Part shown: positions 36,613 to 45,600 of the stretch, in pieces | Numbering within the stretch: position 1 is the first letter of the stretch | Layout: the number at the start of each line of letters is the position of its first letter | Source: Paragordius varius | Lineage: Eukaryota > Animalia > Nematomorpha | DNA: 64,000 nucleotides | Assembly (NCBI GenBank): GCA_964247055.1 | Contig: OZ176053.1 | Span: forward strand, 7,502,001 to 7,566,000 | Direction: 5' to 3' | Position numbers and translations under genes: made by a program | Notes under the pieces: model-generated | What the model was told of the DNA's origin: nothing | Database searches by the model: none | What the model saw: only the letters and a program-made list of their open reading frames with translations

Positions 36613-39374
36613 TTACATTTCTATTCGACAACCGGTTGTAGTTATTTGATAAGGAGGATCAAACGTTATATCGCATTTCACTTGATTGTTTGTATGATCT
36701 AGTTCAGGCACCTTGGCATCTGGATTTACGCTTACCTGTATAAGATTGAAATAAAAATAAATTGGGCATAGTTTTTGACACCAAGGGTGGAAAAGGCAAC
36801 ATTTTCCGTAATTTTAGTGAGGAGAGCATAAACTTAAAATCATTTTATATATTTTTATGTCATAAAAGCGATTTTTTAGCGTAAATAAATTAGTTGGGTA
36901 TATTTATCCCTTCTTCTGTCCTGATAACCATATTCGAAGCATAGGCACAATTATGATTTTTTATTATTACGAACCATATTGGAGTAATTAGGGCAAATAG
37001 TTTCATCAAAAATTTTATTTACAAAAGGTACCGCCTTATATTTCGTTCATTAAGCATAAAAATTTAATTTTACCCTAATTTTATTTTTTATTCTTTTCAA
37101 TTCTTTTTCTATGAAGTCTAAAAGTTGTCAAGCCACGATCGATGTCTCAAAATATATCCATCTAAAATTTTGATTCATACACATTTGGACCATTCACGTG
37201 AACTTTTTTTGCCGGCTACTTCATAGAAACATCTGGCCTAAGGCTCATTAACTTAACCCTGAGTTTTTCTCAATTCATGACGGCTTTAAGACTTGGCTGA
37301 CAGTGAAAAATTAATTTTTGGGGTTCTAACAATGGCATACCGTATTGTTTACGAGTTTGACATAAAAACCAATCTATCTCTACGGCCTAATTCTGATTAA
37401 ACCAGAAAGCAAAAATTGTACATAGTATATTTCATACCACTAAAGTATAATCTCCTGGTGCTACATCTGTCATGTCCACCCATTGGCAATCAATGTCATA
37501 TTTATAAACATCTATGCAACCGACAGAAATTCCTTGGTCTCCAAAGTCTCGGCATTGATACGTAGGGAAAGTATCATATCGGCATTGAGCATCTTCTAAG
37601 CAAAAACTAGCTTTTTGACCGTTTGCTACTGAATTCCCAAATTTATCAAGTATTCGATATACTGAGAATATTTCGAAACTATGGTAATGTCTAATAAATA
37701 AATGATATGGTATATATGATAAGTTTTGAGGAAATATGATTAAACAAATATAACATGCAGGAAAATGCGTATAAATATCTAACATGCATATTAGTGTGGC
37801 ATGCAATTAGTGCAAAGTGTAAGTGCATTTTTTAAAAAATTTCACGTTGTTTTATCATCTAAAATCAAGCGAAACATTATAAGCAGTTGAGTTAACAGGT
37901 TAGCAGAAAAAAGAAGGGCCCAGGGTTATTTAAGTTTTATAATCAATTACTGATGGCACTCGTGCCAATCCCACATATTTTTGGGTAAAAAGGGATTAAA
38001 TGGTGCCGTCCCTATATTCGCTATCGCCGTAGTAAATCGTAATAAATATCGTACATGATTCGCCCAATCTATTGCAACACAATGGTATGCATATAAACAT
38101 ATATCAAACATCAATTTTGTATCCATATAACTATAATATGTGTCATTCAAAAGTTTTTTTTACGGATTATGACCAAAACCTATTTTATATATCATATGAA
38201 ATAACCTCTATTCTAAAAACCTATAATTGTTGTATCCTTTTTTCTTGTAAAACTAAGTTATATATCCCATACTAAGCCTTATATATACAGACATTTTCGT
38301 ATTTTTTGCTAATATTTTTATATCAAAACTTTTAGTGTGCACGTCGTCTTATGTGAAGAGGTGATTATACTAAATCCGTGATTTATTTATTTTTTATTAC
38401 TCATGGCATTGATGCCAATCCCAATAATTTTTATTGAGATAGGGTAAGAATGGAGCTTTTCCAATGTTCGCTATGGCTAAAGTGAATCTTAATAAACTCC
38501 GTTTGTGTGTTTTCCAAGTTTCTACCAAAACATAAACGTGTTTTACGTCGATAAATAAATATAGATAAAGATTTTGTGTTAAATCTACCAAATCGATTCT
38601 CTCTGACGATATCATATGCTGAGGCGGAAATACAATTTTCTTCCATGGCACATGTTAAAGCAAGGAGTGGTGTCCTTTGTAAATGAATTGTTTGTTCTAA
38701 CTCCCGATAATCAACTACCAAATCCGGTAAATCTATTAGTATTTTATAATAACATATTTAAAATAACGTCTCAGTAAATTTGAAAAATATATTTTTAGGA
38801 CTTATCTTACATTAACAAAAATAACAATTATTAAAACCAATTGGTAATACACATAAATTTTATTATTGTTTAGCGATTTGATTAAGGTTAGAGTATCAAT
38901 CTAGACAACAATAAAATCAAAGTAATGCCATAACTTTAATAGATAACTTTTTACAAAATCTGTATTTGACTTCTTAAAGCTGAAATCGATCATGGATCAT
39001 GCAGCTCCAGATCAAACATCACACGCAAAAGCACCCACGCTTATATAATTAATAATTTAAATCATCTGACTGCTAAAATTAAATTAGGTTTTATTATTGT
39101 TTCAAATGCAACGTATTTCCCAATTGGTTTAACCGATTGCTGACTCTTCATGTACAAGACAACAAATTCTTACAAATTAATTTACTCATTTAATACATTA
39201 TGTTAAAATATGATACTTTGTCCACAATAAACTCCAGCAAAGCTTGATTGTCCCGGACAGTCAGGGGTTTTTGCATATCGACATTGTCCTAGATGGTGTT
39301 CCGCTCCTTGGCATGAAACTTGACTTAAAAGAACTGGTCCATAAGCAGTTCCGAAATGCGTTCCCTATGGTCAA

Positions 39375-39419
<45 letters not shown>

Positions 39420-42400
39420 TAAAAAAATTGATAAAACAAGCATTTTAAAAGATGGTGGCTATCTATATAATTAATTTGATTAATCGACCAATATTATATA
39501 AGTCATACCCTTTTTAATTATAGTTTTACCACATTTAAAGTAAACACTTTTAACCCAGCTCCACCTTTTTTATATTCACTTTTAAAATAAAAAATCTAAT
39601 GTTAATTGATAAAATTGTGAGCTTGAATGAAAAAAATATTGAGTTTGATAACGTGTATTTTAATTGTTTATAATGCGCTTCATTTTTTGACAATATAGGA
39701 ACACGGGTAAGCTTTCAGGGCTTCGATCGTTAAAATAGTTTTCAAAATTTATATTAGGTGTAATTTTTTTGGAAAAATATAAGTTATATTAGTTGATTTG
39801 GTAATATGTGAATTTTCTTCCTACACTCGTTTAAAGTTTAAATGGTAAGCATATCATTTATCATTTCATGGCAAAGTTACCTTTTAGCTAAGTATACAGG
39901 TCCCTCCTGTGTTTACACTTCATATATATTTTTTTAAAATTTTTAACAAAGAAAATTTTACTTGTACTGCTTGTTCAGCAAACCCAAAGTTTAACATTTT
40001 GCATATAACAGTTGCTTCCTTCAAACTCCACCCATCACCACAAATATAACCCCAATCGGATTGAGGAAATTTAATAGCTACTCTTCCGCTGTGACCGGCC
40101 CCACCCTCCAGTCTTACGCTGATCGATGCCATATCTTGACGCTAATCAATATTTTGATGAATGACAATGGAATAATTTTTGTATCAATCAATCAATTATA
40201 AGCTATAATTATTTAATACTTAATAATATCCAAAAACTCCGAATAAAAAAATATTGTGAATAAATACGTCTCTATAATAACCACTGTTTCCCCCACCACC
40301 AAAATAACCGGCAAAATCTCCTTGGGCAGCATTATTGGGCGCGACGGACACATACATATTTCGACTGTTATTGAATCTGCGTCTCGATGATTCTTCTAAG
40401 TAAGCTATGGTAGCGGATGGATCAGTTATTCTGGCTCCTGGTGAAAGGTTTGGCCTTATGACATTAATATTATTGGTGTTTTGAGGCGCATTACTTACCA
40501 AAGCTCGATTTAGGAGTGACGATTGATGTGAAGACGACACATTTCCACCACTAACATTCCCTATAAATTGGCGAAACTGTATGCCCCGCGTTATATTATT
40601 ATTCCTTCTGAAAATTATGTATGGACTATTTTCTGTCCGACTTTCGCTGTTCTCCCCTTCAGTTGCAAAAGCTGATGGAAGAGGTGCATCTCCAGATTCG
40701 TGATTTGGGTCAGTGTTATCAATAGTTATGCTTGTGACATCTGATCCCGTTTGTTGATTATCAGGTGGTGGTCTAATGTAACTTTGATCATCAAACCTAA
40801 TAATTTGGCGATGTCGACTATTTTGTCGCGTTTCATCTTCTGAGTTAGCAATTTGTCTTTGTCGATTTCTACGACGATTTATAGCAGCCGTAGTTTGGGA
40901 ATTTGTTGTGGTTTCGGATATGGACTCAATTTGATCATGTGTGTCAGAGCTGTAAATGGCAAAAATATTATGAGGAAAATTAATATATTTAAAGCAAGTG
41001 ACAGTGGGAGGGTGGAACTATATACATACATATGGAATGGAGTCAAAAACATCTTAAGTTTAAAATCAAAATATTGAAATTTATTTAATGTAAATAGCCA
41101 ACACTTATATGCTAACTTCGAATTTATTGTGTTTGAATATTGTTCGGATGCATCATCGTTTGATATTCTGTTTTCTTCGGGGTGTATTTCTGGCATTTTA
41201 CAGATGACACCAGCCGCTTCGCTAATTAAGCAATTATTTTTGCCCCATCGTTTTTGACAATTTTTGATTTGTTTTCCATTGCATGAAGGAGCGCGACATT
41301 CCATCAAACTTTCCTCATTACCATTGCAATTTAGGTTATCCAACCAATATTCTTGGCAAATAATATAAGAAAGAGATGAAAATGTATTTAATATTTTTTA
41401 AAAGATAATACATATTTCGGGCTTTTCCAAACATAGAAAAAAAGAGTCAATTTACGTTAAAACAAATTATATCTAATGGTTTGTTGCTTTTTTCTAGTTT
41501 AAAACCGATTTTTTTCCATTTTAACCTTTACATATAATGGTTAGGATTAGTTTTATATGCCTTTTTAGTTTAAATACATATCTGATAAAAACATACCTGT
41601 ATAATATTGTTTGCCCCCCCCCCCCCCCATGTTTTGTTTTCACTTTTTATAAAATATATAAAAATAAATTTAAGCCGGAAAGGGATTTTTCTCATGCGAT
41701 TCCCGCTACTAGTTTTAAAAGCATCCAAATATATCAACGCCACCCCCTAATAATTTAAATGCCATTGTGAATATAATAATAATAAATCTACTGACATTAA
41801 AAGTATATCAATTATTTGGGATTGGACTATTTCCCAATTAAAAAAAATCAGTATTTATACCAGAATTTAAGGGTGCTACCGAAAATTTAATCAAACAATA
41901 AATATTAAAGGGTGTTATAAATATTTATAAATAAAAAACTATACTTGATGTTACGATGCCATATTCTGAATTTCTTGTGTGCCTCACGGCTGATGGGAAT
42001 CCCAATTGTCGGCAAATGACTTGTGCTTCTTCCATGTCCCATTCATCGTCACAAATAAAACCCCAGGTGTTATTTAGATATATCTGTACATTACCCTGAT
42101 ATATGATTCCAGTGACTGGGTCTGCTAGGTTTCCTTCGCCCCCAGTCAATTTGATAGATCCAGCTTCAATATCAATCAATATAGTTTGAGCATTTAGTGT
42201 ACTGATTGAAAGTAGTAAAACTATAAATATTTTTAGAGTAGTTTTTGCAAGTAAATTTGTGTGAAGTTTGAATTTGACGCTTTGTATAACTTTAGATCTG
42301 CATTTTGTAGCAATATTTACTTGTTTACCATCTTTATCTTCGTTTTTACGGGTTTCGAACGGTTTGATATGACGGTTGTCAACAAAGGAAGTATCGATAA

Positions 42401-42671
42401 AAGAATAATTAGGGACTAGATCATGTTGGAAAGAATATGGTTGTTTGTTTGCATGGTCTGGTGTATGATATTGAGTTGTAGGTGTTGACAAGATATGTTT
42501 TACAAGGTGTAGAATTAGGGAGTAATAATAATTGTAGATGAAATGGACCAAACCACAAGATTTACGCATTTTTGGTTCGACTAATTTAAATTGCATCTCA
42601 TGTTCATTGTATAAAACTCTATTATCTTTGCCTTCTAAACTACTGTTTTCCGCCGCGGTATTGATTAACAT
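36613..42671 (-). CDS. Lysyl oxidase-like protein with two SRCR domains. Exons 42671-41945, 41351-~41117, 40949-40268, 40141-39962, 39364-39217, 38732-38589, [38521-38401 OR 38068-37951], 37690-37438, 36735-36613
   Basis: SRCR motifs (WGFICDDEWDMEEAQVICRQLG, YWLDNLNCNGNEESLMEC, WGYICGDGWSLKEATVICKMLNF). LOX domain LPDLVVD...CAMEENCIS, LLRFT, WDWHxCHxHYH, KASFCLED (LTQ Lys), DVYKYDIDCQWVD (LTQ Tyr), VNPDAKVPELDHTNN. Confidence 0.93.
37951..38068 (-). other. LOX alternative exon B (118 nt): DWANHVRYLLRFTTAIANIGTAPFNPFLPKNMWDWHECHQ
   Basis: Acceptor CAATAG|AT, donor CA|GTAATT, same phases as exon A, 27 of 40 aligned residues identical to A. Confidence 0.85.
38401..38521 (-). other. LOX alternative exon A (121 nt): ETWKTHKRSLLRFTLAIANIGKAPFLPYLNKNYWDWHQCHE
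   Basis: Acceptor GGTAG|AA, donor GA|GTAATA, phase 1 in and phase 2 out. Confidence 0.85.
39378..39417. repeat. (TA)~20 microsatellite in a LOX intron
   Basis: Perfect TA run read directly. Confidence 0.95.
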
Positions 42672-45600
42672 TATGGATGAAATAATTGTTACAGGATCAC
42701 TGTTATGATCTGTGTTAATTTAAATATAAATATAATGTAAAAATTATAAGGAGAATGTTTGTGAAAAAAATTGTTAAGGGCAAAACTGTATATGCTTTCT
42801 TTCGTATAGACGGAATATTTTACTTAAATATAAATGTAAATGTATCAATTTTAATATGAAAGATTGATTGATAATAAATATTAATATCACAACTTGTCAT
42901 AAGCGTATGAAATTACCTTTTTGCCCATGAAATTTAATATGTGCCTATAATTTCTTAATAATAATACGCGGCTAAAGACAACATTTTCAAACCAAGTTTT
43001 GTATTTTTTCATATTTATGGTAATTAATACCACCTCACGTAATGGTATCATCCACATCTTTTTCGAATATTTCCTATGTATATATCTTATATGTTTAAAT
43101 ATATTATGAAAACGCCCAATACAGGTTGATTTTTAACATTTGATATGTAACACTTGTAATGCATGGTATAAAATTATCTATTGGATAAAATTATTTAAAT
43201 TATACCTGTTGTATTACTTTCCCTTAAAACTTATGCTAATTAATTATTTTTTTATGTTTGGGATTTTAGTTTTTTTAACATAAAAATGTAAGATTTTTTT
43301 TTCGATATTAACACCTAAATGCAAATAAAAACAATGTCAACGATTATAATATATATATATATATATATAAGAAATTTAATTTTAATTTTTCATATTTAAC
43401 ATAATGGTGAAGAATGCATATTAAAAATCGAAAAAAGACCGTAATTTATTATAGCGTTATAACCGTTTAAGTTATATTGCGCTCACGTTACAATGGCAAC
43501 AGAAAAGGAAGGTCACTTTTGCATACATTAAAATACTTTTATTATCATATAAATTACATATATAAATTTTATGAGTATTATACAATATTATGTAGTTTAA
43601 GGGTGGTGGTATAATGTAAAATATTATACAAGTTTAAGGGTATAAAAATATTGTTAAAATAATTTAAAAAATTGTTTTAATAAATTATATTACCACCGTC
43701 AAATTTAGGATACTAACAAGCAATGGCTCAACATATATAACATTTTAACTAAAAGTAAAAATAACCTCATTTCGCCAGAATTTTTTCATAACAAAACAAA
43801 TATATAATATTTACATAAATCGAAAATATTTTTTGACAACTTTCATTTTCAAATCATGTTTTCTAAAGGGCTTATTCAGGCATGTATAAATAAAATACTT
43901 TTTTGTTAAAAAACAATTGGTATATAACATATTTTTGATAAAAATGAAAATTTACCTATTTTTTCCTTTTCCATTTCAATTAGCATAATTATCGTGCTAG
44001 GCGACAAATGTAAGGAACTCAGATTTAGAATAATAGTTCAAAAACTTAAGAATTTAACGAAAAAACGTAGCTATGGTGCTTGTAAATTTAGCCACAAAAG
44101 GTGTGAAAAAATATAAGTAAATGGTAGTATAATTTACTATTCAATATGTGAAATAAATTGGATAAACTTTGTCCGTCTATTATTTATTTAATCTTTTTTA
44201 AAAAAAAATAACAGGTAGAATCTATGGATATACGACACATTTCGAAAATTTTATTGATTATGGATAGATATGAAATTAAAGCAACTGTGTTAAAGAACAG
44301 GAGTGTTCGTATATTTTTATAAATCTCAATTCAAAGTAAAAACACTTTATTAATATGTTCTTAAGCGCATTTACCATTGTGAAAAATTGTTCTAAAATAG
44401 GTGAGAGACGCAGCACCGTTTTCTAAGATTTACCATTTTAATATTAGGAAAAATCTTCCGCTATTAGTTCTGTTTTTTTAGGCTGATTAGGTTTCATGAT
44501 ATTATATCATAATTTTAAAACTAGGAGTGAGGTGCATTCACTTTTAAGGAATTTGTATTATACAATCCTTTAAAAATTATAATCGATGGCAGTTTATTAG
44601 AGTGAAGAAGCAAAAAAAGTCACGAAAAGGTGGAGAGATGAATAATTAATATTTCTTTTTTCAATCATTTTCCTATATATTGTTTTAATTAACATACTAT
44701 TATATTATATTATTTATTAACAGGTAAAATATGGAAAATTTAATGAACATTAGTATGACATCCCATCCCTAAACACGATTGAGTCGAATCGATAAAAAAA
44801 GTGAAATGATAATTAAAAATTCAAAAGTGTCGAATAGAAAAAAAACGCTGTTTATGCACTCTGGCAGCAGCAGCATAGGGAGGTAGACTAATTAATGATA
44901 ACTTTGCTAAAACAATCAAAAAAATATAAATGTAATTCTATTCTCAATTATGAGTTATGATAACCGAACGAGCATGGTAATAAAATAGATAACATTATAT
45001 GATATGAATAATTGTTTAAAAAAATGAGTCACGTAAATGCTTGTATGTGTTAATGTATTCTTTAAAACAAACACCTGAGATATATAGGCATATATGAGTT
45101 GCTACCCTCTTGTAAAAATAAAAAATAGGTGTCATCATAGTTTTCGTTTTGGTATTTATTTGTGGTTATAATTATCTGTTATAATAAAGCATTCTGAATT
45201 GTATTTCTTCATATAATCACAATGACACACGCATATAAGTCACATATAACGAGAAAGTAGGGAGGAAAATATTTTTGAGTGCCATATAAAGTTTCATACA
45301 AAAGTTTTTTTCATAACTAACCACTTTTTTCATCTATATATATAGAGGAAAATTGACATTTCTTGTCGCTTAGTAAAGGTGTGATTTCATAACAAGGCGG
45401 ATGATAATCATGAATTATATTAGCAACAATTCCAATTTTTTTATTAGTTATGTTCGTTGCGTTGTAAAAAAATCCGAATATTATTTGTTGAATATCTTAA
45501 ACGATAAAAAAAATATTATGTAAATTTCTTACTGAAAGCCTTATATAATTAATACAAACTGTTGATTGTCCTATCTCTTTACCTTAGATTGTAATAATAT

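Follow-up and report, generated by a model that had tools for sequence, protein, structure and literature searches.

The exon arrangement of a lysyl oxidase gene in the hairworm Paragordius varius raises the question of whether one gene encodes two versions of the segment beside the catalytic copper and, if so, how exactly one of the two would enter each mRNA. The gene lies within a window of 64,000 nt, i.e. the whole stretch of DNA that was analysed, which is AT-rich animal DNA with a G+C content of ~28%. Exon-sized open frames and Pfam matches delineated an SRCR plus lysyl-oxidase (LOXL2-like) gene on the minus strand, extending from ~42200 to 36613. The Lysyl_oxidase profile (PF01186, 204 positions) is covered exon by exon at positions 1-44, 47-84 (by either of two exons, A or B), 86-169 and 168-204, and every catalytic-domain exon exceeded the cut-off of 20.4 bits. 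All exons given below are on the minus strand. The upstream constitutive exon (38589..38732) encodes LPDLVVDY...CAMEENC...RENRF, matches PF01186 positions 1-44 with an E value of 5e-10 and ends in phase 1. The downstream constitutive exon (37438..37690, 253 nt) encodes HYHSFE...QKASFCLED...VYKYDIDCQW and matches positions 86-169 with an E value of 5e-38, and the last coding exon (36613..36735), covering positions 168-204, encodes VSVNPDAKVPELD...TTTGCRIEM followed by the stop codon.

The upstream part of the gene comprises four SRCR exon-sized open frames and a linker frame (39206..42146, minus strand; approximate boundaries). According to the PF00530 matches, the first SRCR domain is composed of ~42146-41928 and 41397-41200 and the second of 40141-39923 and 39364-39206. 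The SRCR domains are thus N-terminal to the catalytic domain, the arrangement by which the SRCR-containing LOX subgroup (LOXL2-4) is recognised; the hairworm gene has two of them, like its arthropod homologues, whereas vertebrate LOXL2-4 have four. Between both SRCR domains, a low-complexity open frame of 265 codons (40223-41017, minus strand) that is rich in Asn, Ser, Thr and Arg is probably a long linker exon, comparable to the Thr-rich linker found in P0013, an invertebrate homologue. In the open frame that carries the first SRCR half (41928-42719, minus strand), a signal-peptide-like stretch, LKIFIVLLLSISTLNA, occurs with no in-frame Met nearby, and the start codon of the gene is probably located on an exon further upstream. 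A perfect (TA)20 microsatellite occupies 39378-39417, in the intron preceding the last SRCR exon.

Two homologous exons, A and B, are located between the constitutive exons of the catalytic domain. The upstream exon ends at 38589 with the donor GTAGAT, and intron 1 (38522..38588; 67 nt, GT..AG) leads to exon A (38401..38521, 121 nt), whose acceptor ends in TTTTGGTAG and whose donor begins with GTAATA; it encodes E-TWKTHKRSLLRFTLAIANIGKAPFLPYLNKNYWDWHQCH-E and gives the metal motif H-E-H-Y-H. Intron 2 (38069..38400; 332 nt, GT..AG, U12-type sites absent) separates A from exon B (37951..38068, 118 nt), which encodes D-WANHVRYLLRFTTAIANIGTAPFNPFLPKNMWDWHECH-Q and gives the metal motif H-Q-H-Y-H. 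The acceptor of B in P. varius ends in GCAATAG and has a weak pyrimidine tract, and its donor begins with GTAATT. Intron 3 (37691..37950; 260 nt, GT..AG) ends in TTATTAG, after which the downstream exon begins at 37690. Both A and B are entered in phase 1 and left in phase 2, and the lengths of both are 1 mod 3. The two exons are identical at 27/40 amino acids and at 79/120 nt (66% at the DNA level), and Pfam positions 47-84 are matched by A at 41.7 bits and by B at 41.0 bits, while a third copy of the segment was found nowhere in the whole 64,000-nt window. Mutually exclusive exons are recognised as neighbouring, homologous exons of similar length and same frame with conserved splice sites (PMC3923563), and the pair shows all of these features, i.e. 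adjacency, homology, length, frame and splice sites. Upon re-reading and recomputation, the two tandem paralogous exons described in the initial annotation were recovered with the same coordinates, lengths, AG/GT sites, phases and amino acid identity.

Local translation of the possible splice products showed that A alone leaves the catalytic domain open, with ...WDWHQCHE-HYHSFE across the exon junction (hyphen), as does B alone with ...WDWHECHQ-HYHSFE. Given that A and B are each 1 mod 3, messages with both exons in or both out encounter an early stop: when A is joined to B, the stop occurs 24 codons into B, and when both exons are skipped, it occurs 22 codons into the downstream exon. The frame logic proposed for this pair, in which a single exon keeps the frame open and both or neither close it, therefore holds. 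The premature stops of the A+B and skip forms sit well upstream of the last junctions, making these forms would-be targets of nonsense-mediated decay (NMD). We propose, with a probability of roughly 75%, that the gene makes two LOX enzyme isoforms by means of frame-enforced mutually exclusive exons.

The initial annotation had suggested looking for the exon pair in relatives. The downstream exon, used as query against 5.8 billion proteins, found one close relative, an 'unnamed protein product' of the horsehair worm Gordionus sp. m RMFG-2023 with 80% identity; the comparison at its locus (OX940783.2, referred to as L010) covers two lineages, P. varius and Gordionus. The pair is present in Gordionus in the same order, with all AG/GT sites intact and with phases identical to those of A and B. 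The upstream exon (L010:8662-8802) is followed by a counterpart of intron 1 of 812 nt, by A' (L010:9615-9732, 118 nt), by an intron of 176 nt, by B' (L010:9909-10026, 118 nt) and by a 3.2-kb intron that precedes the downstream and last exons, and here too the inclusion of A' with B', or of neither, results in an early stop. In the public Gordionus annotation, the SRCR exons and the first LOX exons (L010:8199-10026) are covered by no gene. Between the two genera, the flanking exons are identical at 34/46 (upstream) and 69/85 (downstream) amino acids. The identity of orthologous exons (A-A', 30/40; B-B', 32/40) exceeds that of paralogous ones (A-B, 27/40; A'-B', 23/40; cross pairs, 23-24/40). 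Five diagnostic columns (K/A, L/T, K/T, Q/E and E/Q), in which A equals A', B equals B' and A differs from B, group A with A' and B with B', and the count for other partitions is zero. A maximum-likelihood tree of the four hairworm exons and 23 other LOX segments joined A and A' with a support of 98/97 and united the four hairworm exons in a single clade (89/98); the branch of exon A is long (0.43). Together, the tree, the diagnostic columns and the excess of ortholog over paralog identity argue for a duplication that predates the split of P. varius and Gordionus, yet took place within the hairworm branch.

Comparison of substitution levels between the genera showed that pS is saturated (0.82-0.90), while pN is 0.17 for exon A and 0.15 for exon B, values that lie between those of the two flanking constitutive exons (0.22 for the upstream and 0.12 for the downstream exon). 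The alignment of the three introns between the genera was no better than that of shuffled sequence, and only 1.9% of the 39-codon windows in the gene's own introns are free of stop codons. Exon A differs in length between the genera by exactly one codon (121 vs 118 nt), so that the 1-mod-3 class is preserved in both. Because pN of the two copies matches that of constitutive exons while pS is saturated and the introns are unalignable, both copies appear to have been retained as protein-coding sequence since before the lineages split. The view that both are functional coding exons thus gained support from the Gordionus orthologs, from purifying selection at the constitutive level and from the decayed introns around them, and neutral decay, looked for in either copy, was seen in neither. 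Selection is also the basis on which we infer that exon A is used in mRNA.

Other LOX genes carry the segment once. Single copies were found in a second LOX gene of P. varius, in Daphnia, Tribolium and Limulus and in two arthropod-like contigs; the segment forms a separate exon in Limulus, in Daphnia and Tribolium it and the upstream exon are fused, and the intron after C-H-x is common to all LOX genes compared. The second lysyl-oxidase gene of the same genome (L003; G000:C1:7767493-7768879) is closer to the LOX of other animals and, at the site of the A/B duplication, has one exon only. B scored above A against every outgroup, which together with the long branch of A suggests that B is the conservative and A the derived copy.

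These data fit a mechanism in which an ancestral exon, encoding a strand-loop-strand segment with the first half of the copper-binding hairpin and ending with the equivalents of human LOXL2 Cys625-His626, would have been duplicated in the hairworm lineage before Gordionus split off. Each enzyme-yielding mRNA would then carry exactly one of A and B, an exclusivity that frame and selection suggest, while messages with both or neither would presumably be cleared by NMD, assuming that NMD operates in hairworms. Both products would be complete oxidases; we further infer that both exons are spliced, that the choice between them is regulated and that the isoforms differ in catalysis or substrate. Frameshift coupled to NMD is one of the recognised enforcers of mutually exclusive exons (PMC5740500). 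Three other enforcers were considered and rejected. Incompatibility of splice sites (a U2/U12 clash) does not agree with the donors, which are all of the ordinary GTA type (GTAAT or GTAGT), steric hindrance by branch-point proximity does not agree with the length of intron 2, which at 332 nt, and at 176 nt in Gordionus, is too long, and competing RNA pairings do not agree with the intron-intron duplexes, which were no stronger than those of shuffles in both species (z +0.2 to +1.1). Inverted repeats in the introns are AT-rich, as expected for such introns, and are not common to both genera; conserved competing intronic pairings of the docking/selector type were not found in the introns of the two genera. 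With these three candidates rejected, the frame rule would be the remaining enforcement mechanism. The search for a conserved intronic control element in the three introns of the two genera returned none above the shuffled range. The best intron block, TAAAAAAAACTTTT(G/C)AAT(A)GAC of 21-22 nt, is located upstream of B at 38142-38163 and at L010:9860-9882, i.e. 74-95 nt (P. varius) and 27-49 nt (Gordionus) before the acceptor of B. Since its alignment score lies within the shuffled range, the block may be a chance similarity.

To place the cassette in the enzyme, we used human LOXL2, a member of the same fold family as hairworm LOX (PDB 5ZE3; PMC5899467), numbering its residues as in PMC5899467 and PMC9659206. 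Both A and B align to residues ~592-626, their final His falling on chain position 309 of 5ZE3, that is, His626. The metal of human LOXL2 is held by His626, His628 and His630 with Tyr689, and the H-X-H-X-H motif resides in the ES2 beta-hairpin (residues 614-634), which Cys625 ties to Cys573 (PMC5899467). The position beside the Cu site attributed to the pair from the outset is therefore confirmed, as the final His of A and of B corresponds to one of the three metal ligands. The hairworm copper motif CH-E/Q-HYH is assembled across the junction of A or B with the downstream exon, and this constant exon supplies the equivalents of the second and third metal His (His628 and His630). The two LTQ precursors of human LOXL2, Lys653 and Tyr689, have an aligned Lys and Tyr in the same exon, where the hairworm stretches QKASFCLED and VYKYDIDCQW line up with HKASFCLED and MYRHDIDCQW. 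Equivalents of cysteines 573, 579, 625, 657, 663, 673, 685 and 695 are present in the hairworm LOX. Alignment of A and B to ~592-626, combined with the position of the ES2 hairpin, suggests that the cassette would exchange a core strand, the loop after it and strand one of the copper hairpin.

The products of A and B differ at about 13/40 positions. The most conspicuous fixed difference is a reciprocal swap at human positions 624 and 627, which are Gln and Glu in A and A' and Glu and Gln in B and B'. Isoform A has Glu as the X of H-X-H-Y-H, a residue that occurred there in 0/55 of the family members extracted. The Gln/Glu swap may tune the chemistry of the metal or the cofactor. A long-kept pair with such a reciprocal swap flanking the Cys-His would point to positions where changes can tune the site and still leave it intact. 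It is a tentative suggestion, which we hold to be rather doubtful, that the isoenzymes have different metal-site chemistry or substrate preference and act in different stages or tissues, such as the parasitic juvenile vs the free-living adult. If true, the free-living adult with its thick collagenous cuticle and the juvenile inside the insect would use different LOX isoforms, one of them with H-E-H-Y-H.

Searches for usage of the exons gave mostly negative results. The sequencing runs searched for the gene returned only DNA-like matches, the tiny presumed-RNA runs being without a match and one giving no contig. Protein-collection searches yielded no hairworm transcript-derived protein with A or B, the exon-B open frame as protein query had zero matches, the output of a profile search (insect scaffold plus hairworm exon pieces) was dominated by arthropod proteins, and the 50%-representative protein set held no close relative. 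The Gordionus protein model P0151, which stems from a BRAKER annotation with RNA-seq and protein hints and a TSEBRA filter, begins at an internal Met of B', and its splice from the B' donor to the downstream exon, across the 3.2-kb intron, is the one hint that B is used. One could argue from the runs searched, in which no RNA was seen for A or B, from the sole annotated model, which uses B only, and from the long branch of A (0.43) that one copy is an unused relic, i.e. a pseudo-exon, and that a single enzyme is made. However, an unused segment of 118 nt would be unrecognisable by now, considering how few intron windows are stop-free, whereas both copies are intact, in phase and spliceable in two genera despite saturated pS and unalignable introns, with the pN of each equal to that of constitutive exons; moreover, the long branch of A precedes the split, after which A was conserved. 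We therefore regard a relic as quite improbable. Selection on the peptides likewise bears on the possibility that one exon is a regulatory 'poison' partner whose co-inclusion lowers the amount of enzyme via NMD, with no second isoform being made. Genes are known to be regulated through unproductive splicing, and the A+B message has an early stop in both genera. Yet a poison exon needs just its length and its splice sites, while the peptides of A and B are conserved at LOX-defining (LLRF, NIG, WDWH.CH) as well as type-specific positions, with pN far below pS, and both copies match Pfam as genuine LOX segments, leaving this explanation unlikely.

The start of P0151 allows another interpretation, namely that B serves as an internal alternative start giving an N-truncated protein and that the full-length enzyme uses A only; indeed, the model begins with MWDWHECHQ inside B'. 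We find this very hard to sustain. P0151 has no signal peptide, and ~85 residues are missing from the start of its catalytic domain, among them the partner Cys of Cys625 (PMC5899467); the SRCR and LOX exons further upstream, which are plainly present in L010, received no gene call; and the stretch of B that precedes that Met shows protein-level conservation, unlike a mere 5' leader. Because of the missing domain parts and the uncalled upstream exons, P0151 is most simply seen as truncated; the frame clash between the tandem exons probably broke the prediction, and the exon pair would thus probably account for the truncated automatic annotation of the Gordionus gene. As to an assembly or haplotype artefact, the general risk that attaches to tandem repeats is the only point in its favour, and the copies here are merely 66% identical in DNA. 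Contigs from three DNA runs of two studies, overlapping by at least 30 nt, tile the downstream exon, B, intron 2, A and the upstream exon in succession, and the same pair occurs in the independent Gordionus assembly. Since contigs span the tandem arrangement, the artefact named as a risk by the initial annotation is refuted, and we give it practically no weight against two isoforms from one gene.

Exons 9 and 10 of PKM are a mutually exclusive exon pair in an enzyme. Like this pair and exons 7a/7b of ATE1, the hairworm exons would swap a homologous segment of a catalytic domain to give two isoenzymes from one gene; the ATE1 and PKM pairs are verified by RNA and biochemistry, whereas the hairworm pair is a candidate known from genomic sequence. 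ATE1 exons 7a/7b form a mutually exclusive pair controlled by conserved competing RNA structures (PMC7797038), unlike hairworm LOX, in the introns of which competing RNA structures are not detectable. The tandem mutually exclusive clusters of human and Drosophila show the same homology, phases, exchange of a structural element and non-3n lengths (PMC3923563, PMC5740500); the present case differs from them in its host, a lysyl oxidase, and in being known from genomic sequence. The mechanism and kind are ordinary, i.e. those of frame-enforced mutually exclusive exons arisen by tandem duplication. A literature search of incomplete coverage found nothing relevant on mutually exclusive or tandem-duplicated exons in LOX genes and no report of an alternative exon pair at the Cu segment in vertebrate LOX genes, and the main text of two human catalogues of mutually exclusive exons makes no mention of LOX. 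Within that coverage, the search agrees with the earlier impression that this architecture is undescribed for the family, and such an exon pair appears to be new as a LOX-family feature. The list of proteins that owe their diversity to mutually exclusive splicing would thereby gain an extracellular-matrix enzyme. Lysyl oxidases are intensively studied drug targets in fibrosis and cancer, and the environment of their copper/LTQ site is poorly understood. To our knowledge, the sole LOX crystal structure is that of a zinc-bound precursor.

The DNA runs that cover the locus are Hi-C-like, as loose contig ends start with GATC. Contig ends or jumps with GATC-containing loose ends were seen at 38060 and 38485, and also at 37175 and 38598 (two runs). 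One run contained a joint of 38060 to 38485, and we rejected its interpretation as a 424-nt deletion fusing B and A or as a splice: loose GATC ends of another run lie exactly at 38060 and at 38485, and fusion would create an exon of 147 nt. The joint is read as a proximity-ligation (Hi-C) junction. Four exonic polymorphisms were detected in the DNA runs (at 38647, at 38484 in exon A, at 37660 and at 37648), and all four are third-position synonymous changes, their effects being derived by hand from the reading frame; variants in introns are commoner than exonic ones. One DNA run carries a 26-nt insertion at 38752, within the intron that immediately precedes the first LOX exon; it is an indel polymorphism between samples.
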